64,000 nt of DNA, taken from NCBI GenBank assembly GCA_009103225.1, contig RHPI01000810.1, positions 913,387 through 977,386 on the forward strand. The letters are read 5' to 3'. Of the stretch, positions 5,160-50,741 are shown in pieces. Positions within the stretch are counted from its first letter, which is position 1; each line of letters opens with the position of its first letter. A program made the translations under genes and the position numbers. The notes under the pieces are model-generated. The model saw only the letters and a list, made by a program, of their open reading frames with translations. It did not search any database and was not told the DNA's origin. This DNA is from Chlorokybus atmophyticus. Its lineage: Eukaryota > Plantae > Mesostigma and Chlorokybus algae.

Positions 5160-5461
5160 TTCCCCCCCACTTAGGTTTCAATGTCCTCATTAAAGGGTTA
5201 GCAAAGCCCCACCATGAGCACCGAGAACCAAAGCAGTGAGAGAACCAGGGCCGAAGCGGTAAAGATGTCTGCCAGCACCCTTTTACCGTCCGCGTGTGGA
5301 CACAGCACTCCAGTACCCCCGAAGAATCTCTTGGCAGTTGGTAAGATTCCTTTCGGGCTCCCACGTGTTGTGCTCAACACCATACCCTTTCCATTTCACC
5401 AAGTAAGACGGCGCGCGTCCGCGTCGAGGCTTACGGTGACTCAGGATTGCGTCCACCTCAT
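5160..5461 (-). mobile_element. Misplaced 3' end (chromodomain, 3' UTR, PPT) of the nested inverted chromovirus, between two single Ns
   Basis: Minus-strand EVDAILSHRK...YLVKWKGYGVEHNTWEPERNL, ending in the same CCCCCCCACTTAGGT tract as 4966-4980; flanked by N at 5159 and 5462. Confidence 0.8.
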
Positions 5462-14804: not shown

Positions 14805-17377
14805 TCAAGCCTGTGTGGCAGCGGCAGCAGCAGCGCTAGCAGCAACCGACTTCCCTGCTTCCTCACAGACATTGCGAAGCCTTATATTCTCCTTGATGAG
14901 AGAGCTGTTTTCGGATTCCAGCTCTTCAATGCGAAGAGTCTGTTCTGAATTCATCCTGCGCACGCCCAGACAAGCAAAGTACATGTACATGATAAGAATA
15001 GACATCAAGTAAACTCTGGCCATTCGTGAGCACAGACACGCAACCAGCTTGCTCATTCTCCTATGCCCGCCGACAGTGTACCGGTTCATAAAAGACAGAC
15101 GCATGGTCAAGCTTCTGTTCTCATTCTCCAGCTCTTCTAGTTTCTTGAATGTGGACGGATCCAGAACTCGTGTTGTGCCATTGGTCTTGTCTTGCTTGGC
15201 AGCAGACCTGGTGCATGACACAAGTCAAGGTGTGAATCAACCACGCATCCTGACATGCTTTGGGTTTCCAACAAAGCAAGGGCCGTAGCCGAGGGGTACC
15301 CACGCAATGCGAACGAGGCCAAGGATTAACACATGTGTGCTACCATTGTATGGAGATACAGTGGCTATGGCCACCCTGGACAATGCTGGTACCTTTGATT
15401 TCGTCGTTCTTCCCTTCGCACCCGAGCTGGGTTTACTGTAATACACTCTGAAGTGCTGCGCCGGACAAGGGAGGCAGACTTGGTCTTGAGAGTGCCTGGA
15501 AGTGACACGCACTGCAGGTAAGCTTACATTGTCTAACATGCCACAGAACCACCACCAACACAAACACAGCTCATTGCAAGCAACCATCACCATTGGTTGC
15601 AGGAGGAGTGCCGAGACGCCCGTTTTTTGGCACAGCATGACCATTGACACCATTGACACCATGACAACCAGCACCGTTGATGTTGCTCATAGAAGCTGCC
15701 TTTGTCAATCCACCGGGCTTGGGCATACCAGCAGTGGCAAGTCGCAGTTTGACTGTCTCAAGAGGAGAACTCTACATCATCAAGGTACATGAGTTCAGCG
15801 GGACAATTTGAGACTCAACTAGCACATCAAATCTTGTCACTGTACGCCATGCGTGTTTGTCATACCTGCTCCCACTCTAGGACAGCCGCCATATCTGGAG
15901 AGGAACCTGTTGTCACCGTCGTGCCAATACCTACAACGACACAGGTATTAGACAATGACAGTTGCAATCCCTGTCGTTGATTGACACACACTCACACACT
16001 GCAAGGGCAAGACACACAATGATGGAAAGTAGTTGCCATGGGCATCGAAAAGTAGAGCAAAGTGAGAAGGTCAACCACTTTAACGCGGGGACCTGGGTGA
16101 TTCGGCGCCACATCCATGCCCATCAAGTATGAAGCAGTGAACGCGGCCACGCGCAGCTACGTAATACGCAAGCAAAAGGTCGAGCACACTCGGTCAGGAT
16201 AAAGCCCACGCAAGCATGGCAGGGCAGGGCAGGCCGCACATACAGCAACGCAACAAATGGCAGCAGCAAACATCCATGCAATTCCACTCACTCTGTAGTC
16301 TTTGAAGAGCCCCCGAGGCTGTTGCGCGTCGTTTGGCAAGGCGTACGATACCTGCCCCATCAGACTGACTCCGTTTAATAATATTTGTACGCACAATGCG
16401 CGCGTCCAATGCAGAGCTGACAGTTCTTGTGTCCTGCAGCAAAGCGTCGATGGCTGTGGCAGATAACGACGGAGAATCCAGCATGGGTGACCTTTCGATC
16501 CCGGCAGGATCCTCGACAACCGACACCTTCGTGTCTTCGCTTCGGCTGAAAGATGCCCACCACATCAGTGTTGTGCAACCACCAAGGATTGTCGTGCGAA
16601 TGGCCATGTGCTAGTTACCACAACAAATGTTGACAGTATGCACCTGCGTAGATTGTCAAGGACTTCTTGTAGGGCATCATTCCCTGTTGTTGCAGACACA
16701 GCAGGTGCGGCTGCCATGATGGCAGAGGCAGCAGCGATTGCTGCGGAGGATGCCATTCCAGCTTGTATAAAACCCAGAGGAGGGGCCGACTGCAAAGTGC
16801 TGTCTGCTGTGTTGAAGGTTGCTGACCCAGCCAGCACCTGGCTGCCAACTATGGCTACTGCAGGGACAGTGGCTGGTAATTGCTGCGCTCCAGCCACGGC
16901 CATGCCACCAGAGAAAAGAGCGGCTGAAGGCACTGCTCCTGTTATTGCTTGTGGAGACGGCGAACTGATTATCTCCATTGGCTGACCAGTCGCTAAACTG
17001 GATGACAAAACTAGAGGTGGCACAGTGGCCACACTCGCGGCAAAAAGGGGCGCTTGGCCAGCAGGCGAGCCAGTGACAGGAATGCTCGTTGGGAAAACGG
17101 TAGCAGCAGCTGGAGGAGATGAACTCAACACACCGCTCACAGAGGTGGCAGACACCAGTTGGCTGTCGCTATCTGTGACTGCGGCTGACACCACTGGCGT
17201 GAATGTCTGCGCTGTGCCGCACTCTTGACTTTCGGTCTCCATGGCGGACGATGACATGCTCGATTCAGGTAGCTGCGATCCCCCCTGCCCTCGTGCACTA
17301 TCCAGTGAAGCAGCCCTGCAGGACGAAAGGTCAAACAGGGAAAAAGCGCACTGGCAGCTTGCATCAGTGCAATGCAA
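14805..17377 (-). CDS. Multi-exon gene of unknown function: Ser/Ala/Thr-rich low-complexity exon and C-terminal coiled coil; exon structure only partly resolved
   Basis: Long ORF 16565-17377 with a donor at CGCAG|GTGCAT. Frame-compatible acceptor and donor pairs near 16545, 16156, 15930 and 15855. ORF 14805-15221 has EELENENRSL / EELESENSSLIKEN heptads. No family recognised. Confidence 0.45.
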
Positions 17378-18403
17378 GCTGCCCTAAGCACTGCACGCCC
17401 TGATTGCTACTTTGTGCAGGTACCAGCAAATCAATGCTCAATGCCTTCGTGCTGCATTCTCACGGCGGCGTCAGTCGACCGACATGACATGTCGCTGTAC
17501 GTGCTTTTTCTCACTAGTTGAAACATTTGCAAGAAGCCAAAGCACTGTTTATCTTACATGCCCGGACGCACTTCCGCTGCTGGCGCCTCCCCCGTCGGCT
17601 CCATCGCCTGAGACAGCACGCTCTGCATGACTGCGTTGAGCTCGCGAGCGGCCGTTTCCAACCCATCCCTGAAAAAAACAACGCAAGCCCGTTTAGCATC
17701 CTCTCCGTCCATACAGCCGCGCTCGTGCAGTCTATTGTTAACCACAATGGGTGTAAAAACTGACCCTTGCACGTCGCACGTCATGGTGGTGAAACTCTGG
17801 CTGTGAGCTGTTGTTCCTTCTCCAGTCCAGTAGCCCGTGTTGAGACTCTTGGCGCATGACGCCGGGCAGCCGGACAACGAACCAGACCACCCGCTCACCG
17901 GCGCCCCTGGCCCTCGCCCTGGGCTTTGCCTCGCCTGCCCTCTCCTCCTCCTCCTCCTGCCAGCTTGCCGCCAGCCACTGGGCCGACCAATGCGGGCGGC
18001 TCTCCCACCCACCGATGGTACTCCCTACGCACGCACGGGGCTACACCCGGGCGCATTAGGGTTTCGCTCCATTCCATACATGAGACGCGCCATACAGGCG
18101 GTTGGGCGGTTCTGATGACGGGGGCGTCAGAAAAGCCCAGTCGATATAAACGGCAACGTTCTTACAACCATTGTGGTGCCATCTTTATGTAAGGGCCCTT
18201 GGGATTGTGTGTCATCGAGGTCACCTCTCGTCGACACCTTCAATCTAGCACGCGTGACCATTGCGAACGACTTCATTCATTGTGAGCACGCCTCGTGCTT
18301 GAATCGAAGGAAGCTTCCACATTTATACACATACACATGCATCTTCAAAAGCACAATTCTATGCCAGTATGTACAGTTATTGATGAGGTGTATCATATAC
18401 ATG

Positions 18404-18443
<40 letters not shown>

Positions 18444-18671
18444 TATATACATATGTATATGTATAAATACATACGCATATATGTGCATATATATACATAT
18501 ATACACAAATGTGGCTTCATGTGTGCATATGTATATATACATGCGCATATATACATATATACATACATGTGTGCAAATACATATAAATATAATATGCATA
18601 CGTATATATAAATGTGTGCAATTATATATAAATACACTATGTACATACACACACGTATATATATGCACATA
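18404..18671. repeat. (CA)n plus degenerate (TA/TACA)n compound microsatellite
   Basis: Directly visible; also at about 22088-22355, 22691-22985 and 23255-23325. Confidence 0.95.
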
Positions 18672-19006
18672 CCGTACTTACCCGTTCGCAGTGCCCCCCT
18701 TCCAACATAGTGCCCCCCCCCACCCCCCCACCCCAAAGAATTTGTAGGGGGGTAAGTGTAATCGAGGGGCACTTTATTCGGAAGGGGGCATTTTATTAGA
18801 TCACGATTACGCTGACCAACCGTATTATAACACAAAAAAATACCAAACATGACCGTACACAAGTGTAACCCACATTACATGGGTAACCCTACAGCAGGGG
18901 GGCACTGCATACGGGAAGGGGGCATAACATCCTAACAGCGTGCCCCCCTTTACAATCTAAGGGGGTATTTTTAATAGGGGGGGCACTTATCATGGGGTAC
19001 ATACGG
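18672..19006. mobile_element. Tc1/mariner-pogo-like MITE in a TA-rich tract (copy at 22356-22690)
   Basis: Imperfect terminal inverted repeats CCGTACTTACCCG...AGTGCCCCCC / GGGGGGCACTT...GGGGTACATACGG, internal AAGGGGGCA sub-repeats, TA-rich flanks, no ORF. Confidence 0.6.
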
Positions 19007-19022
19007 CATATATGCATATATN

Positions 19023-22000
19023 GCTACCATTGTATGGAGATACAGTGGCTATGGCCACCCTGGACAATGCTGGTACCTTTGATTTCGTCGTTCTTCCCTT
19101 CGCACCCGAGCTGGGTTTACTGTAATACACTCTGAAGTGCTGCGCCGGACAAGGGAGGCAGACTTGGTCTTGAGAGTGCCTGGAAGTGACACGCACTGCA
19201 GGTAAGCTTACATTGTCTAACATGCCACAGAACCACCACCAACACAAACACAGCTCATTGCAAGCAACCATCACCATTGGTTGCAGGAGGAGTGCCGAGA
19301 CGCCCGTTTTTTGGCACAGCATGACCATTGACACCATTGACACCATGACAACCAGCACCGTTGATGTTGCTCATAGAAGCTGCCTTTGTCAATCCACCGG
19401 GCTTGGGCATACCAGCAGTGGCAAGTCGCAGTTTGACTGTCTCAAGAGGAGAACTCTACATCATCAAGGTACATGAGTTCAGCGGGACAATTTGAGACTC
19501 AACTAGCACATCAAATCTTGTCACTGTACGCCATGCGTGTTTGTCATACCTGCTCCCACTCTAGGACAGCCGCCATATCTGGAGAGGAACCTGTTGTCAC
19601 CGTCGTGCCAATACCTACAACGACACAGGTATTAGACAATGACAGTTGCAATCCCTGTCGTTGATTGACACACACTCACACACTGCAAGGGCAAGACACA
19701 CAATGATGGAAAGTAGTTGCCATGGGCATCGAAAAGTAGAGCAAAGTGAGAAGGTCAACCACTTTAACGCGGGGACCTGGGTGATTCGGCGCCACATCCA
19801 TGCCCATCAAGTATGAAGCAGTGAACGCGGCCACGCGCAGCTACGTAATACGCAAGCAAAAGGTCGAGCACACTCGGTCAGGATAAAGCCCACGCAAGCA
19901 TGGCAGGGCAGGGCAGGCCGCACATACAGCAACGCAACAAATGGCAGCAGCAAACATCCATGCAATTCCACTCACTCTGTAGTCTTTGAAGAGCCCCCGA
20001 GGCTGTTGCGCGTCGTTTGGCAAGGCGTACGATACCTGCCCCATCAGACTGACTCCGTTTAATAATATTTGTACGCACAATGCGCGCGTCCAATGCAGAG
20101 CTGACAGTTCTTGTGTCCTGCAGCAAAGCGTCGATGGCTGTGGCAGATAACGACGGAGAATCCAGCATGGGTGACCTTTCGATCCCGGCAGGATCCTCGA
20201 CAACCGACACCTTCGTGTCTTCGCTTCGGCTGAAAGATGCCCACCACATCAGTGTTGTGCAACCACCAAGGATTGTCGTGCGAATGGCCATGTGCTAGTT
20301 ACCACAACAAATGTTGACAGTATGCACCTGCGTAGATTGTCAAGGACTTCTTGTAGGGCATCATTCCCTGTTGTTGCAGACACAGCAGGTGCGGCTGCCA
20401 TGATGGCAGAGGCAGCAGCGATTGCTGCGGAGGATGCCATTCCAGCTTGTATAAAACCCAGAGGAGGGGCCGACTGCAAAGTGCTGTCTGCTGTGTTGAA
20501 GGTTGCTGACCCAGCCAGCACCTGGCTGCCAACTATGGCTACTGCAGGGACAGTGGCTGGTAATTGCTGCGCTCCAGCCACGGCCATGCCACCAGAGAAA
20601 AGAGCGGCTGAAGGCACTGCTCCTGTTATTGCTTGTGGAGACGGCGAACTGATTATCTCCATTGGCTGACCAGTCGCTAAACTGGATGACAAAACTAGAG
20701 GTGGCACAGTGGCCACACTCGCGGCAAAAAGGGGCGCTTGGCCAGCAGGCGAGCCAGTGACAGGAATGCTCGTTGGGAAAACGGTAGCAGCAGCTGGAGG
20801 AGATGAACTCAACACACCGCTCACAGAGGTGGCAGACACCAGTTGGCTGTCGCTATCTGTGACTGCGGCTGACACCACTGGCGTGAATGTCTGCGCTGTG
20901 CCGCACTCTTGACTTTCGGTCTCCATGGCGGACGATGACATGCTCGATTCAGGTAGCTGCGATCCCCCCTGCCCTCGTGCACTATCCAGTGAAGCAGCCC
21001 TGCAGGACGAAAGGTCAAACAGGGAAAAAGCGCACTGGCAGCTTGCATCAGTGCAATGCAAGCTGCCCTAAGCACTGCACGCCCTGATTGCTACTTTGTG
21101 CAGGTACCAGCAAATCAATGCTCAATGCCTTCGTGCTGCATTCTCACGGCGGCGTCAGTCGACCGACATGACATGTCGCTGTACGTGCTTTTTCTCACTA
21201 GTTGAAACATTTGCAAGAAGCCAAAGCACTGTTTATCTTACATGCCCGGACGCACTTCCGCTGCTGGCGCCTCCCCCGTCGGCTCCATCGCCTGAGACAG
21301 CACGCTCTGCATGACTGCGTTGAGCTCGCGAGCGGCCGTTTCCAACCCATCCCTGAAAAAAACAACGCAAGCCCGTTTAGCATCCTCTCCGTCCATACAG
21401 CCGCGCTCGTGCAGTCTATTGTTAACCACAATGGGTGTAAAAACTGACCCTTGCACGTCGCACGTCATGGTGGTGAAACTCTGGCTGTGAGCTGTTGTTC
21501 CTTCTCCAGTCCAGTAGCCCGTGTTGAGACTCTTGGCGCATGACGCCGGGCAGCCGGACAACGAACCAGACCACCCGCTCACCGGCGCCCCTGGCCCTCG
21601 CCCTGGGCTTTGCCTCGCCTGCCCTCTCCTCCTCCTCCTCCTGCCAGCTTGCCGCCAGCCACTGGGCCGACCAATGCGGGCGGCTCTCCCACCCACCGAT
21701 GGTACTCCCTACGCACGCACGGGGCTACACCCGGGCGCATTAGGGTTTCGCTCCATTCCATACATGAGACGCGCCATACAGGCGGTTGGGCGGTTCTGAT
21801 GACGGGGGCGTCAGAAAAGCCCAGTCGATATAAACGGCAACGTTCTTACAACCATTGTGGTGCCATCTTTATGTAAGGGCCCTTGGGATTGTGTGTCATC
21901 GAGGTCACCTCTCGTCGACACCTTCAATCTAGCACGCGTGACCATTGCGAACGACTTCATTCATTGTGAGCACGCCTCGTGCTTGAATCGAAGGAAGCTT

Positions 22001-22087
22001 CCACATTTATACACATACACATGCATCTTCAAAAGCACAATTCTATGCCAGTATGTACAGTTATTGATGAGGTGTATCATATACATG

Positions 22088-22124
<37 letters not shown>

Positions 22125-22696
22125 CTATATATACATATGTATATGTATAAATACATACGCATATATGTGCATATATATACATATATACACAAATGTGGCT
22201 TCATGTGTGCATATGTATATATACATGCGCATATATACATATATACATACATGTGTGCAAATACATATAAATATAATATGCATACGTATATATAAATGTG
22301 TGCAATTATATATAAATACACTATGTACATACACACACGTATATATATGCACATACCGTACTTACCCGTTCGCAGTGCCCCCCTTCCAACATAGTGCCCC
22401 CCCCCACCCCCCCACCCCAAAGAATTTGTAGGGGGGTAAGTGTAATCGAGGGGCACTTTATTCGGAAGGGGGCATTTTATTAGATCACGATTACGCTGAC
22501 CAACCGTATTATAACACAAAAAAATACCAAACATGACCGTACACAAGTGTAACCCACATTACATGGGTAACCCTACAGCAGGGGGGCACTGCATACGGGA
22601 AGGGGGCATAACATCCTAACAGCGTGCCCCCCTTTACAATCTAAGGGGGTATTTTTAATAGGGGGGGCACTTATCATGGGGTACATACGGCATATA

Positions 22697-22705
<9 letters not shown>
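19023..22705. repeat. Second copy of the 3.68-kb duplication (probable unmerged contig overlap or allelic copy)
   Basis: Identical translations; the only difference I noticed is inside the CA/TA microsatellite. Confidence 0.95.
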
Positions 22706-22734
<29 letters not shown>

Positions 22735-23433
22735 CATGTATGTATATATATATACATATATGTATATGTATATATATATACATGCGCATATATATACATA
22801 TATATACATGTGTGCATGTATATATATGTGATAAAATTTACATATATATACACATATATATACAAATGTATATGTATATGAGATACATACATGTACATAC
22901 ATGTGTATATATATGTGTGTATATAGATACTTATGTATATAGGTATATATGTGTATATATATATATGTATATATATCTGTGTGTACCGTAATGACCAAAA
23001 ATTTACGCATGCAGACAACCTTTTAACCCATTAAAACTGTGTCTATGCGGTTATATTTGATCGCACTAGCAGTCCAACTAACGCCAAAAACCAGCCGCTG
23101 GAGGGCGCCAATTGGTCAGATGCATTGATCTGCTAGCGGAAAGTGTGAAAGCGCTTCGCGCGCGGGTAACGTACATCTGAATCAGACTGTGAGACGGCGT
23201 ACGAAGTGAAACTAATAAACGACATTCAAAAGTATACATATAAAGTTTTTGGCATTATAATATATGTATATATATATATGAATATAGATGGATATATGTA
23301 TATGTGTATATATTTGTATATACATACTATACTTTCCCCAACACAGTCCCCTCTCCGAACACAGTCCCCCTCGACAAATTCAAGGGGGACTGTGTTTAAA
23401 CCTTAGAGGCCCCCCCCCCCCCCCCCCCCCCCC

Positions 23434-23464
23434 NNNNNNNNNNNNNNNNNNNNNNNNNNNNNNN
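23434..23464. other. Assembly gap flanked by poly-C/poly-G
   Basis: Run of N; other gaps at 44537-45487 and 57206-57413. Confidence 0.95.
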
Positions 23465-24141
23465 GGGGGTGGGGGGGTAGGTGCGTGTGGGTGCGTGTGG
23501 ATGCGTGCGTGCATGCGCGTGTGGGTGCGCGTGAGTGCTTGTGCAAGCAAATTACACATTGGTAGCAACAAAACACAACACCAACAATCTCTCACTACTC
23601 AAGGTCCGTCGCAAATTTATATGGCGACTGATTAAGGATTGAGGGACTAACGGGTGCCTGAGCCTGCCTGAAATGTTACTTTTGGACTGTTGGGTTTGCC
23701 ATTGGCTTATGTGAACTGACGCAGACGGCCGCGGGCTGAAAGTGGTTGGCAGTGGCACTGATCGGCCGAGAGTTGTCAACTGATACCCTTTGGTCAATGT
23801 GCACAGACGGCCGTAAGCCGTTAGCCGGTAGTCACGGACAGCTGACATCAATAGCCGGCAGTTTCCTTGCCGTTACATTGCTGTTAATATGTGACCCTTA
23901 CCGTTTGGCAAAAGTTGGCAATTTTTGCCGTAAGCCCACACTAACATGCCATGCAGCTTGTACAAACCTCTGGACTGATTGTTTGATCTTGCAGCTATAA
24001 GCCCACAATATAGACAATGTACCGGCAGTGGTGAGAGTATGTCCACTTGATACTGAGCAGCCGACTTGCGCACGAAACTACCTACAACATTGAGTCTAGC
24101 TGTCGCACTCATGCGCAGCTTGTCAACCCGTGGTGCCTGCC

Positions 24142-25400: not shown

Positions 25401-28226
25401 ATGGGAGTCTTTTGTCCGTATTGCCACGTGCGCTTCGCCACACGCAGCTCGGTCTACATGCACATTGTTGGCAGCAAGGTGTGCAAGCAAATCAAGCTGT
25501 ATGTCGGCCAGCGTCCATTACAGTACGATGCGGGTCATGTTGAACCGGGCAACTCGATCCAGGGTGCGCACATGCTTGATGCTGAAGGACCCCCACCAAG
25601 AGACATTCGCACAGCAGCGACAGGAGGAGGAGGAAGTGATCGAGGGCTTTTGATGTGTGCGTGTGCCTGAGAAACATGTGGCACGCCGGCATGGAAGTGG
25701 AGGCATCCCTTCACACGCGTCAGAATCCATGTGGTATGGGTCGGAGCATGCTCTAGCAGTGGCATTCGTGCAGTGCAACAACGGCCAAGGCCTGTCGGCC
25801 TCCGACATGGGGCGGATCATCAAATGTAATGCATCCGAAATGCACACTTCCTGACGAAAGAGCTCCAGTGGGAGACCGGTGTGCATGTGGCCAACTACCT
25901 CCGGACCACAATTGCTTTCTCTTAATATGAGGTGTGTTCACGGTGTGCGGTGCATGTGCTTCAACCATTAAAGCCATGTTATATATGCACATGGGAGTGT
26001 GCTGCCGTAACAGAACTACGTGACGGCTGACCTGCGCAAGCTTAGAGACCCTGAAGATCATAACATCAGCGTCACATATATGCCGGCTAAGGTCTGTAAA
26101 ATGCAGTAGCTAATGCAGTATCTATGAAGTATCTAATCTGAGGCCAGCATGCCTGTTAATGCTCCTGGTCCGAGCAGGTATGGCTTGCGCGATTGTATGG
26201 CAATCCACATGCCGCTAATGGCTTTAATCTCCAGTACAGTGGTGACGAGCACAGCTTTGGCCATCCTTCCACAGGCAATTGATGGAAGGATGTTGAGCGG
26301 GATTTGAGGAGAGAGGTGGGGGAAGCGTCCTACTTGGCGCCTGCCATTCTGTACAGTGACAAGCCCACACTGGACAGCGCGGGCAAGCGCTCTGGCTACC
26401 CTCTGATGGCATCGCTGGCCAACTACAGTTTGGACATGTATGCTAGCAACATGGGGGTTGTTATGATAGCGCTTTTGCCGGTGGTTCACGCAGTGGCCGG
26501 GCATCCCACTTGATCGCAGGGCAACGAATCATTTCCAATTTAACAACGTGAGATTTTTCATGACGCTTTGAATGTAGTGTTAGGGGATGTGAAGCGGGCG
26601 AGCTGGGAAGTTCTGCAGCTCATCGACCCGAATGGCGTCGAGCGGCGTGTGTTTCCCGCGCTTGCCAACTACATCGGCGACTTGCAGGTAGTGGGCATGC
26701 ATTGTTGTAATCGGATGCAGCCTGCCGGCAAACAGTGCATGAAGGACGTTGTCAGTGGAGCATCCGAGTTTGTCGTGTTGCGGGAGACTGCCACACTCGC
26801 ACGCACTGTGTCAGGCAATCAAATACGACATCCTTGCGATGTTTGTCTCGTCATCGAATCGAATCTATTGGAGATGAATGAGGATGCGGAATTGAAAACC
26901 GAGGCTTTCTACACACCAGCAATACGACAGCTGCGGGCGGACCTGCATGGCGGTTAGGAATGCATGCGGGACATCCAAGGCTTTGAAAGAGCAGCACTCC
27001 ATGCATGTTGAGGAGGTAATGGTTAATTTATCGGCATTTGTGAAGATGAATGGCTTTCCGTGCAACCAGGCAATGTGGTTTGGCAACAAAATGCACTGTG
27101 GGGTTGGCAACAGTCGTGGGTGCCGGGAGCTGACTGCTATTCTCGCCTTCACCCCAACGCAATGCATGTGCTGAGAGGCATCATTGACCATCCGCTTGCT
27201 GATGTGTACGACGCTGCGAAGGAACGCATGCGTCCATTCATGAGACGGATTTGCCAGGCTAGACACATTTCTGGTGTTGCTTTTTTGTTGAATCCAACGA
27301 CACGTGCTCACAAGCAGATGTGCACAGGCTAAATGTATGCAAGGCGACTCTACGGGTTTTGCACTTCAAGGCACCCACAAGCATAGTAGATTTCTTCCTG
27401 TCTTACCACTCTTTTCAGGTGGTGGAGAAAGTGGTGTTGCAGGTGCTGCCGGTCCATGCAGATCGTTTGCTGCTCGACAGTGAGGGCAACAATTTCTTCA
27501 CCATCGCTGCCGCATTGCTTGCCCAAAGGAACAAGAAATTACTCAGGCCGCATGAATATGTAAGAGACCCTGACCACAACCGACAACGAGCTGGCTGCCT
27601 TCAAGTCTGCAGTGTTGCATCCGCTACTGTCGTCATATTTTGCACAGAAGTCAGGTTGAAAGATTGAGAAGATGCATCAACTCACTCATTTTGGGCCGGC
27701 AATTGTCAGCAGTGGACACTCAGATTGGTTCAGCGCCAACCGCTTGGAGCAGACGCACGCCCAAAATATCACACAGTGGGCGCGTGGTGGCAACAACCGG
27801 GACTACCAGGCGCGTATCCTGAAGGCATGGAGTTGTGCGGAATATGTGAGAGAGGATGGCATGGTCGTGGATCTCGAGATGCTCTCGATCATGGCACAGG
27901 CGCGGCAGCAGTGCTGTAATGTAATGGAGAAGACGGACAATTTGCTAAGGATGGATGTGCTGACAAAAAGAGAGTCCAGAGAGTCCGCGCGTAGCCGCCA
28001 AGTCGCCCTAAAGACTCCATTCGCCTACAAGTTGCTTGCTACCCTGGACAGCTGGTTACAGAGGAAACAACTGCAATTGGCTGCCGGGTGGCGTGCTGTT
28101 CGCATGTTGATCGAAGGCGCAGCGATGTACATGACATCAGGGTCAGCATGGCGCGCGCAACTGGGATGTTCCATGGGCGGCCTTGGTTCTCTACACTTGA
28201 GTTGGAAGGTGACGAGAACGGTGTGA
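25401..28226 (+). pseudogene. Plavaka-family transposase (N-terminal C2H2-like finger; intron-containing; stops and frameshifts)
   Basis: CPYCHVRF...HIVGSKVC. RLYGNPHA...HPSTGN*WKDVE. ILYSDKPTL...GYPLMASLANYS...IALLPV. FHDALNVVL...NGVERRVFPALANYIGDLQ(E)...HPCDVCLV. PNAMH. MHQLTHF...DWFSANRLEQTH...GNNRD. These blocks occur in the order typical of Plavaka transposases. Confidence 0.85.
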
Positions 28227-28722: not shown

Positions 28723-29042
28723 TCAAGCCTCATAATTCCATAACACAGGAGGGTAGTCACAGCGCATATCCATTGTTTCAAGCATGAGACGCCTTATGCA
28801 CTCCGCCATTGCGGGAGGAACTGCATTCGCTATGGTAATGGCCGAGGTCATCCATGGCACTCTCAGCGCTGTTTGCCATGCAGCAATGCCGCCCCTGGTG
28901 CTTCGAAGGCCATAGACCGGGTACATTTGTTGTGGCGCTTTTAATGTCACGATTGTCTTCTTCGCGCTAGCGAACAGGTGCGGCGATAGCAGTCCAACCG
29001 CCTTGCCCGCGTGCGAGCAGCGTGCTGGTGGGGTAGCTACCA
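28723..29042 (-). pseudogene. C-terminal half of a C5-cytosine DNA methyltransferase
   Basis: MYPVYG...GGIAAWQTALRVPWMT...IANAVPPAMAECIRRLML (motif X region); in frame with the N-terminal half once the Copia is removed. Confidence 0.85.
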
Positions 29043-32000
29043 TGTTGGAGTATAGGACCTGATTCTGCCGTCTCTAGACTTTACTCAGCTTAATCTGGCT
29101 AAGTACTCATTAGTGTTAAAGTATAGGACTAGATTCTGCCGTCTTTAGACTCCAGTCAGCTTAGTGTGGCTAAGTATTTAGCAATTTTGTACTTAGCAAT
29201 ATATTGGAGTATATGTCATGGTTTTGCCGCCTCTAGACTCCAGTCACTTTAGTCTGGCTAAGTGCTCATTAGTTTGTTCTTAGCAGACTCCAGACGTCTG
29301 TGTAGTTTCCTAACAGTGTTGACAATCCTGGCAGTTTCAACGGTTTAGGGCTGTGTTAGGGTTTGGTGTTGACCAAACCTGACTTGTATGACCATTTTAT
29401 AGTTAGAAAGGTTATTTGGGTATAAGCGGACGCCCATACACGTTTTCTAATGGTTCACTTTCACTTGTGCTTGAGTCTGGGGGCGGCAAGGCCTGATTCT
29501 GGCGTGGCCTGGATTTGATTTGATCTGGCATGGTCTGATTGGTTGTTTCGCTTGCACGGACTGTTTGAGGGTGTTGTGTTGTGTATTCACGCAATAGCTC
29601 ACATCTCAACAGGATCTGGGCCCACCTACGCTGGGTATTAAGCTGGTATAGGCATTTTGGTGGAGCATTTACTTTGATAGTAGCTTTTTTTGAGTTTGTG
29701 CCATTCTGGTGAGAATGTGAAGGTCTGAACGCCTGGAACTGCTGTTTTTGGCCTGATTTGGGCTTGTTTTCAGCAAGGGTTTTGCTATGACGACCAGCTA
29801 CGACAAGGTGGTGATTGAGCCGCTTTGAGATGACAATTACAACGCCTGGAGCAGCCACATGATATGGTTGTTCGAGCACAAGAGCTTGTGGGAGTTCGTG
29901 GACCCAGAGGAGGCAGACCCTCTACCCATAGGCCGGAGCGCTGTTTAAAAGCAGAACTCCAAAAAAGCACTTGCACTCATTCGTTTGAAGGTGAGGGACT
30001 TTGACTTGGTCACGTTGGATGCTGGCTCCACTGCTAGGGAGGCTTGAGAGAAGTTATCAGACTCTTTTAAGGCCAAAAACAATGCGAAGCGTGTTTAGCT
30101 AAGGCGCAACCTGAATGCCTTGAAAAAGGAGTTCAGTGAGCCAGTTACCAAGTACATTTCGTGAGCAAGAGAGCTTTAAAAAGACCTACTAGGCGTTGGC
30201 AGCAAACTGAAGGAGTCTGAGGTGGTTTGGGCTATCCTTTCAGGTCTGCCAGACGACTTTAACACCTTGATCACGGTGATGAAAGGTCTTGACTCTGACC
30301 CCACGTTGGATGAGTTTATGCCAAGGTTGCCACAAGTTGAGCAGAGGCTCAAGAAGAAGGATGAGGCTTCAAATACGGTAGCTTTTGCAGTTTCCAGATC
30401 TGGTGGACTAAGTTACAGCTCCAAACCCAAGGCACACGGAGCTGGTTCTTCAAACCACAGCAGTTTCTACGAAAAAGCAGGTTAGGAAGTGCAACTACTA
30501 CAAGATGCTTGGTCGTTTAGAGGAGAAAGGTTGGAAGAAGCACTGCAGGCGTAAGAGTGTTAGAAAACAGGAAACCTGTGGCTTTTACTGCTGGTGCTTC
30601 AAGCTTTGACCAGAGCTGGGTTTTAGACTATGGTGCCAACCGCCATATGACCTTTAACAAGTCTGCATTTGTCTCATTTAAACGCCTGGTCAGACCCTTC
30701 AGTGTTGGATGCACTGAAAAGGGAAGCGTGATGGGCGCTATTGGCCAGGGGGATGTCATCCTTGATTGCCAAGTTGAGGGTTCAACAAGGCAAGTGCAGC
30801 TCAAAAATGTTCTTTATGTTTTATAGCTTGCTATAAGTTTATTGTCAAGGCTGCTGCACTTGCTGGTGCTAAGATTGAGTTTAAGGGGCGAAAGGCCTGC
30901 ATTGTGTTTGGGGGCATTAAGAGGCTGGAGGCTTTGAGTCATGGAGGAGAGTTGTACTTGATTCAGGGCCAGACTTTAGTCTAGCATGTCCAGAAAGTTC
31001 AGGCACTTGTTGCAGCACCTTTGGTGTCTGCTCAAATCTGGCACAGGAGGTTTGGGCATTTGTGCTTTGATAATTCGGCGCTTTTGGTGAAGGAAAGCAT
31101 GGTGGATGGCATTATTTCCAGTCCTGAAGACTGCCAGGCTACGAAGGCTGCTTTGTGCGACTTTGTGGTTCTCAGAAAACAGACCCGGCTGCCATTTCAT
31201 CACTCTACTCGTGTGAGTACGCATTGCTTAGAGCTTGTCCACATGGATGTGTGCCGTCTCATGCCGGTGATATCATTTGGTGGAAACTTCAAGTATTTTG
31301 TCACATTCTTGGATGATTTCAGCAAGTTGTCCGTGGTCGTGTCGTTGCTGTTGAAGTCAGATGTTACCAAGGCAGGCGCAGAGGTTTTCAGCTGATTGAG
31401 ACCCAGAACAGTCTAAAAGCTACTTCAGTCCGCTCAGATCGTGGTGGCGAGTTCGTTAACAACAACTTGAGGGACTACTAATCTAAGAAGGGCATGCGGC
31501 ATGAGACTACAGCACCTTATACTCCAGAACGGCAAGGCGCAAGGGCTAGACCGCACGGTCTTGGAGAAGGTTAGGTCCGTGCTCATTGATATCAAGATGG
31601 AGGACTGCATGTGGCGTGAGGCTTTGCTTGCTGCAACTTTGTTCGCAACCGCTCTCCCATGCAATCTCAAGCCAAGACTCCGTGGGAACTATTCACAGGT
31701 GTGAGGCCTGATGTTAGCATGCTGAGAGTCTTCGATTCTGCTGCCTTTGTCCAAGTACCCAAGCAACAGCGACACAAATCAGCTAAAGTCAGCCGCCGTG
31801 GAGTGTTTGTGGGTTATGAGATTAGTGTGAAGGCGTGGAGAGTTTTGCTGGATGAAACTCGCAAGGTTGTGGTGAGTCGTGATGTGACTTTTATTAAGGG
31901 AGGAGTAGAAGCTGGAGTTTTGGGCGTTGACATCACTTTGGATGCCGATAAACCTTTAAAACCAGCAGTTCGAGTTGTTTCAGACCATGTTCCTGCAGTT

Positions 32001-33979
32001 TCAGAACAGAGTCTGCATTATCCAGGTCATGTTACTCTGGATTCATGCAGCAAAAGCCCTTCAGCTCTTGACACCACTGAAACCCAACACCAGCAACAGC
32101 GAGGAAAGCAGCACCGTTCGCGTGAGAGGCAGAAACCTGATTGGTTTCAAGACAAAGCTTATGCGGTGTTTGATGCACTGCAAGGTCTGAAGGAGCCCAG
32201 CACTTATGAGCAGGCTCTTCAAGGTCCAGATGCAGACCTTTGGCAAAAAGCTATAGATGAGGAGATCGCGTCCTTGCTTGCCAACCAGGCCTGGAGGCTA
32301 AAAATTGTTCCGGCCGACACAAAACCCATTCCGGTCAAGTGGGTTTACACGATCAAGAAAGACGGCCAAGGCAACATCGAGCACTACAAGGCGAGGCTTG
32401 TTGCGAAGGGCTTTCTTCAACAAGAGGGCATCGACTTTAATGAGGTCTTTGCAACCGCTCGTAAGCATACAACTTTTCGGACTTTGCTGGCTTTGGTGGT
32501 CGCCCAGGACTTTAAGCTGCATCATCTTGATGTGAAGACTGCGCTTCTCTATGGCGAGCTTGAAAAGGACATTTATGTGCAACAACCCAAGGGCTACCGT
32601 AAGGGAGGTCCCAATGTGGCTTGTAAGCTTATGAAGGCCGTATATGGTCTGAAACAGGCGCCCAGGGTTTGGCACATCCGCTTAACCAAAGAGCTTGAGA
32701 TTCTGGGCTTTGTTCCCAGCACTACAAACCAATGACTCTTCGTTCCTGAAGAGCTGCAGGAACAGGCGGATTCGTTTTCTGAAGATCTGCCAAGATCAGC
32801 CAAGTGCAGATGGTCACCAGATTGGTTGACAAGTATAGGCTGCAAGATGCCAAGGTTTATGTCTGCACCTACCTTGGAGCACTGGAAGGCTGTAAAGGCT
32901 TGTTTGCGCTATGTGGCTGGGACTTCCAGTGTTGGCATTACTTTTTCTGTTGGACTTACAGTTTTGGAGGGTTACTGCGACGCAGATTATGCAAGTGACC
33001 TTGACTCTAGGCGGTCCAGTACTGGCTACACATTCTTGTTGAATGGTGGAGTCGTGAGTTGGAGCAGCAAGCTTCAACCCACTGTTGCAGTTTCTACTGC
33101 AGAGGCTGAGTATGGCTGCATCTTAGGCAACCATAGAGGGGCTTTAATTGCGCAAGCTGGTTGCAGACTTGGGTCTAGACTAGACTGTCATCCCCATGCA
33201 CTGTGACAACCAAGGAGCTATTAGACTTTTAAAGCACCCTTTTGCTTCAGTCAAATCGAAGCACATTGTTGTCATGTATCACTTTGTACGGGAGCGCGTC
33301 GCTCGTGGCGAGGTGGAGTTCAAGTTTGCAAGACTGAAGACATGCTTGCAGACTTTATGGCAAAAGCTTTGACACCTTTTATGGTCCAGACCTGCTGCGA
33401 AGGTCTAGGCATCCACTAAGCTGCCTACGCGGGAGTGTTGGAGTATAGGGCCAGATTTTGCCGTCTCTAGACTCCAATCAGCTTAGTCTGGCTAAGCACT
33501 CATTAGTGTAGGAGTATAGGACGAGATTCTGCCGTCACTAGACTCCGGTCAGCTTAGTCTGGCTAAGTACTTAGCAGTTTTGTACTTAGCAATATATTGG
33601 AGTATAGAACATGGCTTTGCCGCCTTTAGACACCAGTCAGCTTAGTCTGGCTAAGTACTCATTGGTTTGTACTTAGCAGACTCCAAACCTGTCAAGTTTC
33701 CCAACAGTTCTGACAATCCTGGCAGTTTCAACGATTTAGGGCTGTATTAGGGTTTGGTGTTTACCAGACCCGACTTGTATGACTACTTTGTACTTAGAAA
33801 GGTTATTTGGGTATAAAGAGACGCTTATACACGTTTTCTAATAGTTCACTTTCACTTGTGCTTGAGTCGGGGGGCGGCAAGGCCTGATTCTGGCGTGGTC
33901 TGACTGGTCATTCTGCTGGCACGGACTGGTTGAGGTTGTTGTGTTGTGTATTCACGCCTAGATAGCTCACATCTCAACA
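29043..33979 (+). mobile_element. Decayed Ty1/Copia LTR retrotransposon inserted into the methyltransferase
   Basis: LTRs 29043-29611 and 33436-33979 (TG...CA); TSD TACCA at 29038-29042 and 33980-33984; PBS GGATCTGGGCCCAC. Gag ATG at 29787; WVLDYGANRHMT; WHRRFGHL; LVHMDVC; SDRGGEF; KARLVAKGF; YCDADYA...STAEAEY. Part of RT is deleted. Confidence 0.95.
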
Positions 33980-34403
33980 TACCACTGGCTGTCTTATCCT
34001 AAAAACACGGTGTCAAAAAGCTGATAGGCCAAACATCATGCCATAAAGGGACAGATTGGGTCTGCATGAGGAATCTGCTCCTTGCACATTTCCAATCACA
34101 AAAGTGACCTGGCTTGCAAGCAGCAGATGTCGGACGAGCGATATTATATCCGAGTGTTTCCAGAATGCGCCATGTGTTGCCCGTTGAGGTGCCGGGATAG
34201 CACCTGAATAGACCTGGCATGGTGGACTAGCCGACATGAGCTTGTACTTGCTCAGCTCTCCTGCACTCAGGGTGCATACGTCGTGGTGTATAAAGGGCAG
34301 CGGGTACGTAGAGGAGGGACTTCTGTTCATACCGGTCACGTCAAAGCCTGTGTGATATAGACCGACACTGGCACCGCACAGCCGCAGAATAGGTTGAATG
34401 CCC
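33980..34403 (-). pseudogene. N-terminal half of a C5-cytosine DNA methyltransferase (prokaryote/phage-like)
   Basis: RAFNLFCGC(G)GASVG (motif I, 1-bp deletion near 34376); SASPPCQ (catalytic Cys near 34218); VIGNVQGA (ENV decayed); GMMFGL; F*HRVF (RxR with CGA>TGA). Confidence 0.88.
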
Positions 34404-34499
34404 TTGGTCTGCGTGTGCGTCAAAGCTTATTGTTAAATGGCGTGTATGTGGTCAAAACTGGTCATGGTGCTGGCCAGGGACTAACAATGATGCCGTGCG

Positions 34500-34990
34500 G
34501 GCTTTCTTTGCGACTGACATTTTCACCTCCGGCGCGCAGATTATAGCGTGCCCCATTAGCTGATGTGTACGCGAATGCGTTGTGCCCTTCAAAGTTGATG
34601 GTTTGTGGTCGATTACCGTCAATGATGACTATACGGTGCTGCCCTGCAAAGCCATTTTCCATTGCACCATGCATATACGATGCGTCCTCAATCTCGCACG
34701 CTAAGAAGCGTTGCTGACGCTTGCTTGAATAATTCCACAACGCCGGCATACTATTCCCCATCCAGCGGCCAATGCACTATGACACTCACACTGCTCAGCT
34801 GCTCGCATCCAAGCTTATTTGCGTTCCGCAGTCGATGCAGTGCATTGCCCAATGGTCGATGGTCTGCCTCCTCTACAGCGGCCAGGGGGTGGAACTGCCC
34901 ACGCCCACACCGTGGAAGACTGCTCCAAATGCGACAACATCTTCAACATGCATGAAATAAGCATACGCCCAACATAACATGCAGTGATAT
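34500..34990 (-). pseudogene. JmjC-like 2-oxoglutarate/Fe(II) dioxygenase domain, in frame with the methyltransferase
   Basis: CYVG, then a frameshift to HVED (34950-34939), FHGVG...W, and a distal IVIIDG...GHNAF (His near 34583). Spacing resembles KDM-type JmjC. Motif-level recognition only. Confidence 0.45.
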
Positions 34991-35059
34991 GTCGCTGGCC
35001 ACTCTGCCGAATTACCTCCACAGCATCCACCACCTGTTCACTAACCACATGTCCCGGTT

Positions 35060-35390
35060 TTGTCCATGTAAAGAACCCGCATGGGTTCCCCTCGCCACTT
35101 GAATCATGAGGGCGAGCACGATTCGCACACGCACTGCACACAAAAGGAAAACTCGGGTTCCTTGCATAATACTTTGCCGAGGCGGCAACCAACACATCGA
35201 AATTGTGTGTGGTGTGATGCCAGCAAGCAACACTCAAACCGTGGCACACTGTCTGCACTCACTGGCAGTCAGTCAAGTGTGCTAGCATTTGCTGCTTACG
35301 GCCATTGGCACATACGTACGCATGGCATTGTGGGCACACCAAGCATGGTCTCCTAGGTGAGGGGGATGCAACTGCTGCCGCCGACATCAT
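35060..35390 (-). pseudogene. N-terminal C2HC finger and GRF-like zinc finger of the same gene
   Basis: ATG at 35390: MMSAAA...CPQCHAYVCANGRKQQMLAHLTDC followed by donor CA|GTGAGT; next exon RNPSFPFVCSAC...NPCGFFTWT. Confidence 0.55.
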
Positions 35391-35852
35391 GCAAAATATG
35401 AATCGGCACGGTTGCCCATATACTGAGCGAGACTTTAGGGTATGGGCATTAACTTAGGGGTGCCAGCTTATGAACCCTAAATCAGTCACACTTCAAGAAG
35501 CACAACTGTACCATGTACAGTATTCCAGTACCATGCATGGTACTACATCAACATGAATAGTACTCCATCCATTGATGGTACTATAGTACAAGGATACTCG
35601 CATACTACCATGATCATAGAGTAATATTGTGCTGTCATTCCATGAAATCTAGAGCGCTGTCCGAGTTTGTTGCTGTCAACCATGCTTTGAACCTCCAAGG
35701 TATGCAAGCCATGCGCCGGGCAATCATCATACACATGTACAGCCAATGCTTCTGACAACAGCAAATCTCGGGTGCACCATGCTGCAACTATACATGTACT
35801 TACATAGTTCACAGGTGTTCAACACACCACTACAGTACATGCACAATTGGTA

Positions 35853-36311
35853 TTAGAGCGGGGTCCAAATCACCGTCGACACATTGGCGTCTTGCAGCAG
35901 GCGTGGCGACCAAAACGGGTGAGGTTGCTTGCACATGGGACACGCTTGTAGCTCCTTTGATTTATATGCCACGTGCTCCTGCTGGTATATAATGCAGACA
36001 TAGCACATTGCATGCTTGCCACAGGGCGTCTCCCCAACCGCTAGGGGGGTGGGCATTTTGATGCGACAATTCAGCACGCATGGTGCACGCGGGTATGCAA
36101 GCTGCCTCTGCCACCAAACTCTGTTATCGCACTGCAGGCGCAGCGACTCCCATCTGAATGGCCCAGCACAACGCTCCACTGCCTGCTCGATTACCTGACG
36201 CCCTTCTGCCGCCATACACCACCTGCTCGTCTCGGTGGTCTCGTCCAGCACGCGTTCATTCAGGCCCTCAACATGGCTGTTGTTACTCTTGTAATCGCCC
36301 GCAATCGCCAT
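35853..36311 (-). pseudogene. RING-finger-containing ORF
   Basis: CVLNC...PCGKHAMCYVC...CPMC cysteine/histidine spacing. Confidence 0.65.
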
Positions 36312-37589
36312 GTTCTTCGAGCTTTCACAGATTCAGCTCGATGTGCCGTACGACATACAGCCACTGCCAGCTAAAGCATGCCAAATACAGCTCGAATGGT
36401 TTTACTTGCCACCTAGTGTGTTTGCTCAAGTAGTGGCACATATCTCGACCTGCATCGATCGACATCAACAGGTACATCTGTAGCAGCAGGTCGAAGTTCT
36501 GCTCCGCGGATAGCTCTTGCACAGTGCCAGGTTGCTGCGGCAGTATTAACACCATCATATCGAGGACGGCAAGGGGCAACAACATACTACGGATGGCCAT
36601 GTCGTGTTTAGGTTTCAACCACGGCCAATCCCCAAAGGTCTGTTTAGACCGCACTCTCCGCGTTTGCCCCACTTATTGCATACTCTCATCACCTCGAGGC
36701 ATGCCGCATGCGGTGATGCAGCGCGTCTTGGGCGTATTGTAGGGCGATCAACTCCTTTGCACTACGAGTCAGCCCTTAAAAGCGTCTGTGCGTCGGTGCT
36801 TTGAGCTTAAGCAGCTCATGCCGCACCGGCTGTCTCTCTGGACGATGCTAAGCACCCACAAGACGCTGTAAACCCGCCTGTGCCTACTCACAGTCAGCCT
36901 TAATGAGGCTTCAAGGCGCTGTGCTTCTTTAACTACATTGTAACAATGCCTCACCTTTGCTTTTCTGAAAGCTGCGCAGAAAAACAAAAGCTTCATGCTC
37001 GACCTCACGAAGCAACAAAGGTCGTGGAGGACGAGAGGCGACCAATAAGCGCAAGGCTGTGAAGCAAGAAGATAACGCCTTACCTTCTTTGAGTGACAGT
37101 GCCACGGAGAGCACTTGTCAGGATGTGCAGGTTGACCCAAAAAGAAGAAAAAGGTTATTGCAACAAGGGATGCTGACAGAACCAGAGAAGAACACCTCGA
37201 TCAATCTCTTTACCAATAGCACAGGCTAGTATTAATGTGGCAAGCTTAGAGGGAGAGGGCGAGCTGCCGCTGCTTTTTGATGAAGATACCTCCGGATGGT
37301 CAGAGTGCGGTGGCAAGTGAGTCTCCGCAGCAAGCAAAAGGGAGGGTGCTGAATTGTTATTGCGAGCATGTGGCTGTGGTTGAGGGGAGGCAGGATGTGC
37401 AGAACAATCGGCTACTTCTTGCAAAGCGCACGAAGGCTAGCTTGAGGCGTTGACGCAGCTACCTGCATCGCAGCCGGTGGTAGCGAGAAATTGGCAACGC
37501 CATTCCGCCACTCTCCGATCAGTTCTGTTACCTCCAGTGGCACTTCACGCATCAGCCACGACCATTGTTTTGTGCTTGCAGACTTAAGG

Positions 37590-48768: not shown

Positions 48769-49554
48769 ATGGCTGACACAGATAGGATGCCCATCGAGTC
48801 CCTTGATCTGCACAACTACGCTTCATGGTCGCTGAAGATGAAGTTGGTGCTGATCCGCAAGAAGCTCTAAAGTTTTGTCGATCCCACCTCCTCCACATCA
48901 TTGCGGCCAAGAACAGGTGACACTGGTACCTGGACAGAGAACTCACAATCAGCTTTTGCGCTGATAGGCTTGCACGTCAAAGACTTCCATCTCCCTCTTA
49001 TTGCGAATTGCAAGACTGGACGTGAGGCGTGGGAGGTCTTCGACACCCTCTTCAAGGCCAATAGCAACTCGCGCAAGTTGCAGCTGAGACGCAAGCTGAC
49101 ACTTCTGAAGATGGAGCACAACGAGCCAATACAGAAGTACATCTCGCGTGCAAGGGAGCTTTGGCAAGACCTTGCAGCAGTGGGCCACGATGTGAAGGAA
49201 GAGGAGGTGATGTGGGCAGTCTTAGCTGGCTTAGGAAAGAGCTTTGCTACGCTAGTGACTGTGTTGGAGTCCTCAGATGTGGTTTTGAAGTTTGCTGATG
49301 TAGTGCCTAAGCTGCTAGCTGTGGAAGGCAAGTTGGATGTTCAGGAGATAGAGAATGGTGGAGAACCTATCGCACTTTCTGACTCATCTTCTCAACACAC
49401 ACGAAACAGGAGCAAAGCAGGTGGTGGGAAGCCATCACGTGGCAAAGAGTGTCACTACTGCAAGATGAAGGGCCACTTCATTCGCGAGTGCCAAAAGAGG
49501 ATCCACGATGAGGCAACCAAGGAGGAGCACGCCACGATGGCGATTGCTTTCTAG
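48769..49554 (+). pseudogene. Copia-type gag, unit 1 (TGG>TAA stop near 48868)
   Basis: Same sequence as the intact copies with one premature stop. Confidence 0.9.
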
Positions 49555-50741
49555 CATTGGTGAGGACCTCAAGGAGTTGCAGTGGATGGTGTTCGTCCGT
49601 CCTCTCCCACTGCAAGGGCGCGTGAAGGACATGCGCAGACGGAGGTCGTAGACACAAAGGTCTGTGAGAGTTACTGCTAGCCTATGAGTAGTTGCTGGTG
49701 TTGAGCTGCATACACTAGAGGTTGCATTGCTGTGGAGTTGTTTTTTGGTAGCACACAGGTGTGCGGTACTGGATAGAACACTTCAATTGATTGGCATGCA
49801 AGGACTGAGTTGTATAGCTAGCTAACAGGAGATGGGAGGGGTGCTTTCCTTGGTAGAAGGGTCTGATCAACCCTTGCACGGCCTACACTCTGGTACAGCA
49901 TTGCTAAGGTAGAGAACTCAGTGTAGTTTATAGCATAGTTTGCCATTGAGGGAGTCCTCGAAACCACCTGAGCAAGGTCAGGCGTGGCGTGGTGGAACCT
50001 GATGCGACAACTATGAGGAGGAAACAAGGAGTATTGGAACCTTGTAATCCTGCTGGCAGCACGAGGAGAAGGATGGTGTCGTGGAGACAAGCATCAAGTC
50101 CGTGGGAGCAACACATCCGTGGGAGTGTTCGATGGAGTAAGTTAATGTGGGTAAGCTTGCGAGAAGATCTTGAAGTTCAAGGTCAAGCTGCTCGCGTGGG
50201 AGTGTTAGATGTTATAGCTTGTTGAAAGTACATGTATAGGCGGCGCCTACATGTAGTTGGTACGATCAGCTTAACCTTTATAGTTACGGGAGTTACGAGA
50301 GTTACGAGAGTTACGGGAGTTACGGGAGTTACGGCAGTTATGGTCAACCATGGTCAACTTTGACTTTGACCGTTGACTTTGACCATTGACTAGTGTTGAC
50401 TAGTGTTGACTTTGACCAGAGTTGACTAGAGTTGACTAGTGCTTAGTAGCATAGTATATAAGACACTGTATACTGCTTAATACAGTGGGTCGCACATTGT
50501 CTCTATAGTTGGCGTGCTTGCTGCACTTGTCCTTAGTGTGTGCACACTTGTATGTAGGAGGCAAATACACACACACTAGGCGCATCACTAGTTCTCAACA
50601 CAAAGTCCGTGATTTGTACGGTTATGGGCCCACACTCGCTTGTGTGATCGCTTGTGCTAGTGAGAGAAAGTGTTGAGCATAGGCGCCTACTAGTAGAGTG
50701 TTCTTGGGGAGAGGGTGAGTTGTACTATTGTGTAGCAAGCA

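Follow-up and report, generated by a model that had tools for sequence, protein, structure and literature searches.

The mobile elements described to date with a cytosine methyltransferase of their own are retrotransposons, and DNA methyltransferases (DNMTs) are listed for Copia and DIRS elements of streptophytes and for SymbioLINE elements of dinoflagellates in the summary of de Mendoza et al. 2018 that is given in PMC12344493. The cargo enzymes known from Plavaka DNA transposons are of the demethylation or N6 type, with TET/JBP proteins in fungal elements (PMC12730594) and, in red-algal elements, PAG2, which combines a PF01555 N6/N4-type methylase with a SET domain (PF00856), and PAG3, a ParB-like 2-oxoglutarate (2OG) oxygenase (bioRxiv 10.1101/2025.02.11.637652). 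Also known are 'orphan' DNMTs that eukaryotes derived from viruses or bacteria, and these are generally without companion domains (PMC12344493). We have analysed a stretch of 64,000 nucleotides from Chlorokybus atmophyticus (contig RHPI01000810.1, positions 913,387 to 977,386, referred to here as the window), and describe within it a predicted C5 DNA cytosine methyltransferase gene that is split by a Copia retrotransposon and lies beside the remnant of a Plavaka transposase gene. It is probably a dead copy of a repeated gene with introns, ~1.73 kb in length, which encoded a zinc module, a probable Tudor domain, a linker and a minimal C5 methyltransferase of the giant-virus or phage type, adjacent to Plavaka and with no JmjC domain.

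The locus shares some features with each of the described systems and differs from each in others. As in the retrotransposons with DNMTs, a mobile element is proposed to have its own cytosine methyltransferase, but the streptophyte retrotransposon enzymes are, according to the same summary, of the DNMT3 type and encoded inside the pol open reading frame (ORF), whereas in the window there is a separate, apparently spliced gene of viral type beside the transposase of a DNA transposon. In Plavaka/KDZ elements (those with fungal TET/JBP and those with red-algal PAG1-3) the transposase is paired with an accessory gene for a DNA- or chromatin-modifying protein, as in the window, although the known cargo does not include any C5 methyltransferase joined to a Tudor-like reader. 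The orphan DNMTs are lineage-specific C5 methyltransferases from viral sources, like the window enzyme, and the window gene is set apart from them by its N-terminal zinc/Tudor-like extension and its high copy number. The short C5 methyltransferases of phages and bacteria (phrog_363; PF00145, ~220 amino acids [aa]) have the same motif order (I, IV, VI, VIII, X) and a very small target-recognition region, but unlike the window gene they are stand-alone, intronless and without reader domains. A group of small C5 methyltransferases that contain a methyl-CpG-binding domain (MBD) (P0004, P0154, P0005, P0066) shares with the window enzyme a minimal core, a YSGxIPAxQRxxHGxxW stretch and a DYPP C-terminal tail, and P0004 is 44% identical to the window piece with motifs I-VIII and 31% identical over the whole enzyme. 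In these proteins motifs VIII and X are separated by an inserted MBD, and there is no N-terminal zinc/Tudor part, whereas the window gene is without the MBD insert and has predicted introns and the N-terminal extension. A full-text literature search turned up no DNA transposon whose transposase gene adjoins one for a C5 methyltransferase with a Tudor reader.

The methyltransferase gene and the Copia insertion

Searched exhaustively with phmmer, the N-terminal piece of the enzyme (34016-34423) matched 1136 proteins at E <=0.001, with a best E of 1.9e-23, and most of these relatives are ~220 aa long and begin a few residues ahead of motif I. PF00145 was recognised in five of ten relatives scanned singly and in 30 of 48 longer ones, and the window piece itself corresponds to the DNA methyltransferase family phrog_363 in PHROGs (E 3.2e-9). 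Motif IV is present as SPPCQ and aligns with the invariant S-P-x-C column of the relatives, which contains the catalytic Cys, and motif X is present as AVPP in the alignment with P0004, P0005 and others. By these motifs and matches, the enzyme is a C5 DNA cytosine methyltransferase of the small type seen in phages and giant viruses. The two pieces flanking the Copia element gave no match when searched alone against Pfam or against PDB sequences, and from isolated pieces the methyltransferase was recovered only by exhaustive phmmer and PHROGs. An earlier note on this DNA had described a C5 methyltransferase hidden from the ORF tracks and split by Copia, which phmmer, PHROGs and tblastn all bear out; it had named a DNA_methylase match as the test of this core call, and although Pfam gave none for the isolated pieces, the phmmer and phrog_363 matches uphold it.

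In a quick maximum-likelihood tree the window enzyme lies on a long branch within a clade with the MBD-insert methyltransferases (Shimodaira-Hasegawa-like approximate likelihood ratio test [SH-aLRT] 96), two of which are encoded on contigs with giant-virus hallmarks, namely topoisomerase II, ribonucleotide reductase and a D5 primase-helicase. An AlphaFold2 (AF2) model of 34016-34378, made with 42 sequences, has a predicted local distance difference test (pLDDT) score of 82.6 and alternating strands and helices, for a fragment that is without strand 1 and the C-terminal half. With the same fragment, Foldseek gave weak, generic Rossmann matches, with M.HaeIII, DNMT2 and DNMT3B among them (E 0.26-0.42). 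When 267 family proteins were compared with the locus by tblastn, nothing matched ahead of motif I and the window gave no further copy, and a homologue search with P0005 returned the general family only, with no paralogue from the C. atmophyticus genome. The closest relatives, at 2874-3716 of contig L004 and 10001-10843 of contig L001, are 280-aa methyltransferases with the MBD insert between motifs VIII and X. On both of these giant-virus-like metagenome contigs an aquaporin (MIP) gene adjoins the methyltransferase gene, which on L004 is also near genes for a D5 primase-helicase and a lysyl-hydroxylase/glycosyltransferase.

The intervening element has the features of a Ty1/Copia retrotransposon, with two long terminal repeats (LTRs), TG at its start and CA at its end, a 5-bp target-site duplication (TSD), TACCA, on both flanks, and a gag-protease-integrase-reverse transcriptase order with RVT_2. 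Its plus-strand ORFs match RVT_2 (E 1.5e-42), SH3_retrovirus, gag_pre-integrs, Pol_BBD and a Copia gag remnant in Pfam. In placing a Copia element flanked by TACCA at 29043-33979, splitting the gene, the earlier note was exact. We consider the insertion to be old because the LTRs are only 88.7% identical when aligned with one another (Kimura two-parameter distance [K2P] 0.124) and the ORFs are fragmented.

When 29043-33979 and one TACCA copy are removed in silico, the two minus-strand methyltransferase pieces fuse in frame. On the excised DNA, P0004 aligns over residues 1-278 of its 280 across the junction in one tblastn alignment (E 5e-37), and P0055 likewise gives a single alignment through the junction (E 1.4e-30). 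Single alignments thus run from motif I to the C-terminus over the junction; the join is therefore real, and before Copia inserted the enzyme was complete. The excision and these alignments together agree with the earlier proposal that excision of the element and one TACCA restores the reading frame. Copia is a later insertion inside the catalytic domain, the methyltransferase is not carried by it, and the locus is a clean example of a nested insertion.

Repeat copies, decay and the gene model

We compared the region 30600-36500 at 80% likeness with an independent public run, X1, which is kept as contigs. The summed contig depth is ~15 over the Copia element compared with 150-300 over 33985-36500, and in view of the jump at 33985 the methyltransferase and everything upstream of it therefore belong to a far more abundant repeat than the Copia element. 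X1 contigs that end at 34007 run on with GGTAGCTACCA and then TTGGCTGT, which corresponds to the uninterrupted empty site. The gene is a member of a high-copy, transposase-adjacent family and not a host oddity. Between the window copy and the X1 copies over 33985-36500 there are 100 A>G, 98 T>C, 78 G>A and 58 C>T differences, with ~20 in each transversion class. A/T is commoner in the window at positions where the X1 consensus has G/C, as would be expected if a methylated repeat had decayed by deamination.

The high-depth X1 consensus differs from the window at three informative places. It has one additional base after 34376, which gives an intact motif I, FCGCGGASVG, on the coding strand, and because of this extra base we assign a 1-nucleotide (nt) deletion in motif I to the window copy. 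It also has five additional bases after 34713, and it has C for T at 34462, which changes the TGA at 34464-34462 to TGG (Trp). The earlier note had described two of the stops in its frame as being of CGA>TGA type, but at this stop the consensus reads TGG and not CGA.

The window copy is heavily decayed. Motif I is split over two frames by the deletion between 34377 and 34376, and a 5-nt deletion relative to the consensus lies between 34714 and 34713. Motif VI reads GNV in place of ENV, with loss of a Glu that is invariant in one alignment of the relatives and conserved to at least 90% in a second, and the first Arg of the RHR in motif VIII is replaced by TGA (34015-34013), such that neither the ENV of motif VI nor the RxR of motif VIII is intact. 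The gene model contains three further in-frame stops, TGA at 34464-34462, TGA at 34422-34420 and TAG at 34753-34751. Of the five methyltransferase motifs listed in the earlier note, then, IV and X are present as described, whereas I, VI and VIII are altered. Judged by these lesions the copy is a pseudogene that cannot make the enzyme, not an active member of its family. As a pseudogene the locus contributes little by itself; it is the independent run that shows the gene and its upstream region to be high-copy.

The exons and introns upstream of the enzyme are predicted from a splice-site scan and phase check (Table 1). A perfect GTGAGT donor at 35262 directly follows the first Cys/His cluster, and the second donor is GTTAGT at 35045, with an alternative, GTAATT, at 35015; the acceptors are a polypyrimidine-CAG at 35134 and TAGAG at 34871. 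Both predicted introns keep phase, and exon 3 begins at 34870 in phase 0, in the same frame as is independently demanded by the X1 consensus indels. Joined together, exons 1 and 2 would encode 72 residues, the first 59 of which include 11 Cys/His positions, and end in CGFFTW. The Cys/His-rich N-terminal part starting at the ATG at 35390, which the earlier note had recognised, is present and constitutes a zinc-rich part of the protein. Exon 3, when X is placed at the two indels, has four internal stops in 404 codons, compared with 17.6 +/- 4.0 in shuffled sequences (P 0.0005). The span of the gene, 35390-28723, is 1726 nt when the 4942 inserted bases are subtracted.

Because the consensus has the 5-nt indel at 34713, the gene frame above this point is a different frame of the window. 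In this corrected frame the region upstream of 34713 reads VIVHWPLDGE, a TAG stop and YAGVVELFKQ, and QRFLACEIED follows past the indel. In Tudor domains of the LBR, PHF1 and PDS5 types, strands 1 and 2 conform to [VI]x[VA]xWPxDxxWYxGxV, and a strand-3 stretch resembling xFEDx comes next. By its likeness to this pattern, the WPLDGE-stop-YAGVV...EIED stretch is a probable Tudor-like domain, of the kind that reads histone marks. Several results speak against this assignment and that of the zinc module. No Tudor domain and no zinc-finger family was found by Pfam (E <=10) in the upstream pieces, the protein atlas returned nothing usable for the mid and zinc pieces, and the upstream part taken alone has two to three stops in ~145 codons compared with 6.8 in shuffled sequences (P 0.03-0.08), which is a weak depletion. 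The Tudor-region piece had no match among PDB sequences (E <=10), and a homologue search with 34465-34773 gave no candidates.

It is possible to read the enzyme instead as a stand-alone methyltransferase of viral type, for example from an endogenised giant virus, with the zinc and Tudor parts over-interpreted and the upstream DNA either non-coding or unrelated. The small size of most family members and their start just before motif I would suit this, as would the weak stop depletion upstream and the failure of any domain library to recognise the upstream pieces. Nonetheless we regard it as unlikely, as no ATG separates the stop at 34422-34420 from motif I, the consensus has Trp in place of the stop at 34464-34462 and a frame that stays open past two indels, and the repeat depth of the upstream DNA equals that of the enzyme. 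Moreover, the splice phases fit, and the combination of WPLDGE/YAGVV with the 11 Cys/His positions of exons 1-2 is improbable in junk sequence.

Table 1. Features of the methyltransferase locus and its neighbourhood (positions within the window).
Feature	Position	Strand	Basis
Decayed Ty1/Copia LTR retrotransposon	29043-33979	+	LTR pair, TSD, Pfam domains
Copia LTRs	~29043-29611 and ~33436-33979	+	Direct repeats 29043-29592/33436-33957, extended by alignment
TSD copy 1, TACCA	29038-29042		
TSD copy 2, TACCA	33980-33984		
C5 methyltransferase, N-terminal part, motifs I-VIII	33985-34419	-	phmmer, PHROGs, consensus contig
C5 methyltransferase, C-terminal part (post-motif VIII, motif X AVPP, DYPP tail, stop TGA 28723-28725)	28723-29042	-	tblastn/alignment over the excised Copia
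Plavaka (CACTA/EnSpm superfamily) transposase remnant	26544-26954	+	Pfam PF18759
Predicted exon 1, ATG at 35390 and first Cys/His cluster, CxxCxxCH...C...H...C	35263-35390	-	
Predicted intron 1, 129 nt, GTGAGT...polypyrimidine...CAG	35134-35262	-	
Predicted exon 2, second half of Cys/His zinc module, ends CGFFTW	35046-35133	-	
Predicted intron 2, GTTAGT...TAGAG, contains HVED and YVG	34871-35045	-	
Predicted start of exon 3, Tudor-like motif (~34795-34640) and linker	34420-34870	-	Frame from consensus indels and TGA = TGG in paralogs

The Plavaka neighbour and the question of cargo

The transposase remnant matches the Plavaka family PF18759 with an E of 1.7e-6 and 28.0 bits (cutoff 26.3), over model positions 181-248 only, and the gene is decayed. 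It lies on the plus strand and converges tail to tail on the methyltransferase gene on the minus strand. Judging from this arrangement, the methyltransferase gene is most likely the cargo or a companion of a Plavaka DNA transposon. A search for transposon ends, which bears on cargo status, identified no convincing inverted repeat or matching flanks around both genes. The sequence CACTACTCAAGG at 23593-23612 resembles an end of the CACTA type (CACTAC), and is immediately preceded by low-complexity DNA and an N gap (23434-23464). Its sole inverted partner, at 36425-36435, shares seven terminal bases with it, which is about what is expected by chance, and the flanking triplets are TCT and GCA respectively.

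That no terminal inverted repeats or target duplications can be defined, and that a single copy is readable in the window, would also be in keeping with a multi-copy host gene family which is merely near transposases and is not cargo. This seems to us more doubtful still than a stand-alone enzyme, as the gene is high-copy and decayed, has the transition-rich divergence of a repeat, and is directly convergent with the Plavaka transposase.

In the reading that we favour, the gene encoded the N-terminal zinc module, the probable Tudor reader, the linker and the minimal C5 methyltransferase, and lay beside a Plavaka transposase gene. In working copies the reader would presumably dock on marked chromatin and the methyltransferase would write 5-methylcytosine (5mC) there. 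In this copy, Copia jumped into the catalytic domain long ago, and the four in-frame stops, the two frameshifts and the Glu-to-Gly change in ENV accumulated after that insertion. It is conceivable, and we propose it tentatively, that Plavaka-type transposons of this genome carry their own reader-writer cargo, in which zinc and Tudor modules are fused to a C5 methyltransferase captured from a giant virus. If so, the cargo gene could let the element deposit 5mC at marked chromatin, it would be the first 5mC writer borne by a DNA transposon, and it would provide a direct route for DNA-methylation enzymes from virus to transposon to host. It would also offer a testable link between histone marks and the targeting of 5mC by genomic parasites.

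Upstream of the methyltransferase gene, and inside the high-copy stretch of run X1, is a minus-strand ORF of 152 aa (35856-36311), with a weak RING-like match to zf-C3HC4 (E 0.041) and a faint match to CxC4, a KDZ-transposase-associated family, at E 0.19. Pfam searches with 20 further ORFs around the gene found no OTU or other domain.

JmjC-like and GRF-like motifs, and other features of the window

The earlier note had also assembled a series of short blocks upstream of the enzyme into a polypeptide combining a putative demethylase or hydroxylase with the methyltransferase. The blocks themselves all exist, with HVED at 34950-34939, GHNAF at 34587-34573, YVG at 34976-34968, CGFFTW at 35081-35064 and the ATG at 35390, and the same region contains the Tudor-like motif. 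The fusion of a JmjC-like Fe/2OG dioxygenase (HVED...GHNAF) to the methyltransferase draws on the presence of HVED and GHNAF in one window frame, ~120 codons apart, and on the 2OG oxygenases of Plavaka elements elsewhere (fungal TET/JBP, PMC12730594; red-algal PAG3, bioRxiv 10.1101/2025.02.11.637652), but it is largely refuted and we regard it as highly improbable, since there is no match to it in Pfam (E <=10), PDB sequences or the protein atlas, four stops lie between the two blocks, the stop count of the frame is at chance level, the consensus 5-nt indel at 34713 sets HVED out of frame with GHNAF, and HVED lies inside a well-formed predicted intron.

The searches behind this statement covered the pieces from 34465 to 35420 in Pfam at E <=10, PDB sequences at E <=10 and the protein atlas, and none identified a JmjC, cupin or 2OG family; a JmjC/cupin match had been put forward as the test of the domain, and Pfam and PDB sequences gave none for any piece. 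The motif-I frame was said to continue up to HVED, but this frame has six stops in 219 codons compared with 10.3 in shuffled sequences (P 0.10), and is broken by the consensus indel after 34713. We also rejected the HxD...H triad, which is split over frames: HVED is in modelled intron 2, in a frame not used by the consensus, and GHNAF is in the linker before the methyltransferase. The JmjC half of the proposed polypeptide is thus unsupported, and we infer that what separates the zinc module from the methyltransferase is better explained as a Tudor-like domain and linker than as JmjC. An AF2 single-sequence model of 34465-34776 has a pLDDT of 40.4, too poor to judge the fold. A zf-GRF domain (PF06839) had similarly been suggested, but Pfam gave no match to it on the exon-1 and exon-2 pieces at E <=10; a likeness to its pattern, CxC...GRxF...C...CxFFxW, is confined to the CGFFTW tail and an NGRK and is suggestive only. 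One contribution of the locus is that it clears away the false lead of a JmjC-methyltransferase fusion.

Elsewhere in the window, 16565-22546 appears to be duplicated in tandem at a ~3.7-kb period, such that the ORFs at 16565-17377, 17554-18012 and 18295-18747 recur at 20249-21061, 21238-21696 and 21979-22431. Its 270-aa ORF had no Pfam match. A low-complexity, palindromic, TA/CA-rich stretch is located at 22686-22990, and a long run of N at ~44.5-45.5 kb, an assembly gap, gives rise to false long ORFs. Repeated Copia gag-only ORFs with Retrotran_gag_2 and a zinc knuckle are present at 48867-53481 and 61365-62150; three are 261 aa long (50742-51527, 52696-53481 and 61365-62150) and one is 217 aa. 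A Ty3/gypsy chromovirus pol on the plus strand at 2481-7786 has RVT_1, RNase H, integrase and a C-terminal chromodomain, and includes an intact integrase ORF of 499 aa.

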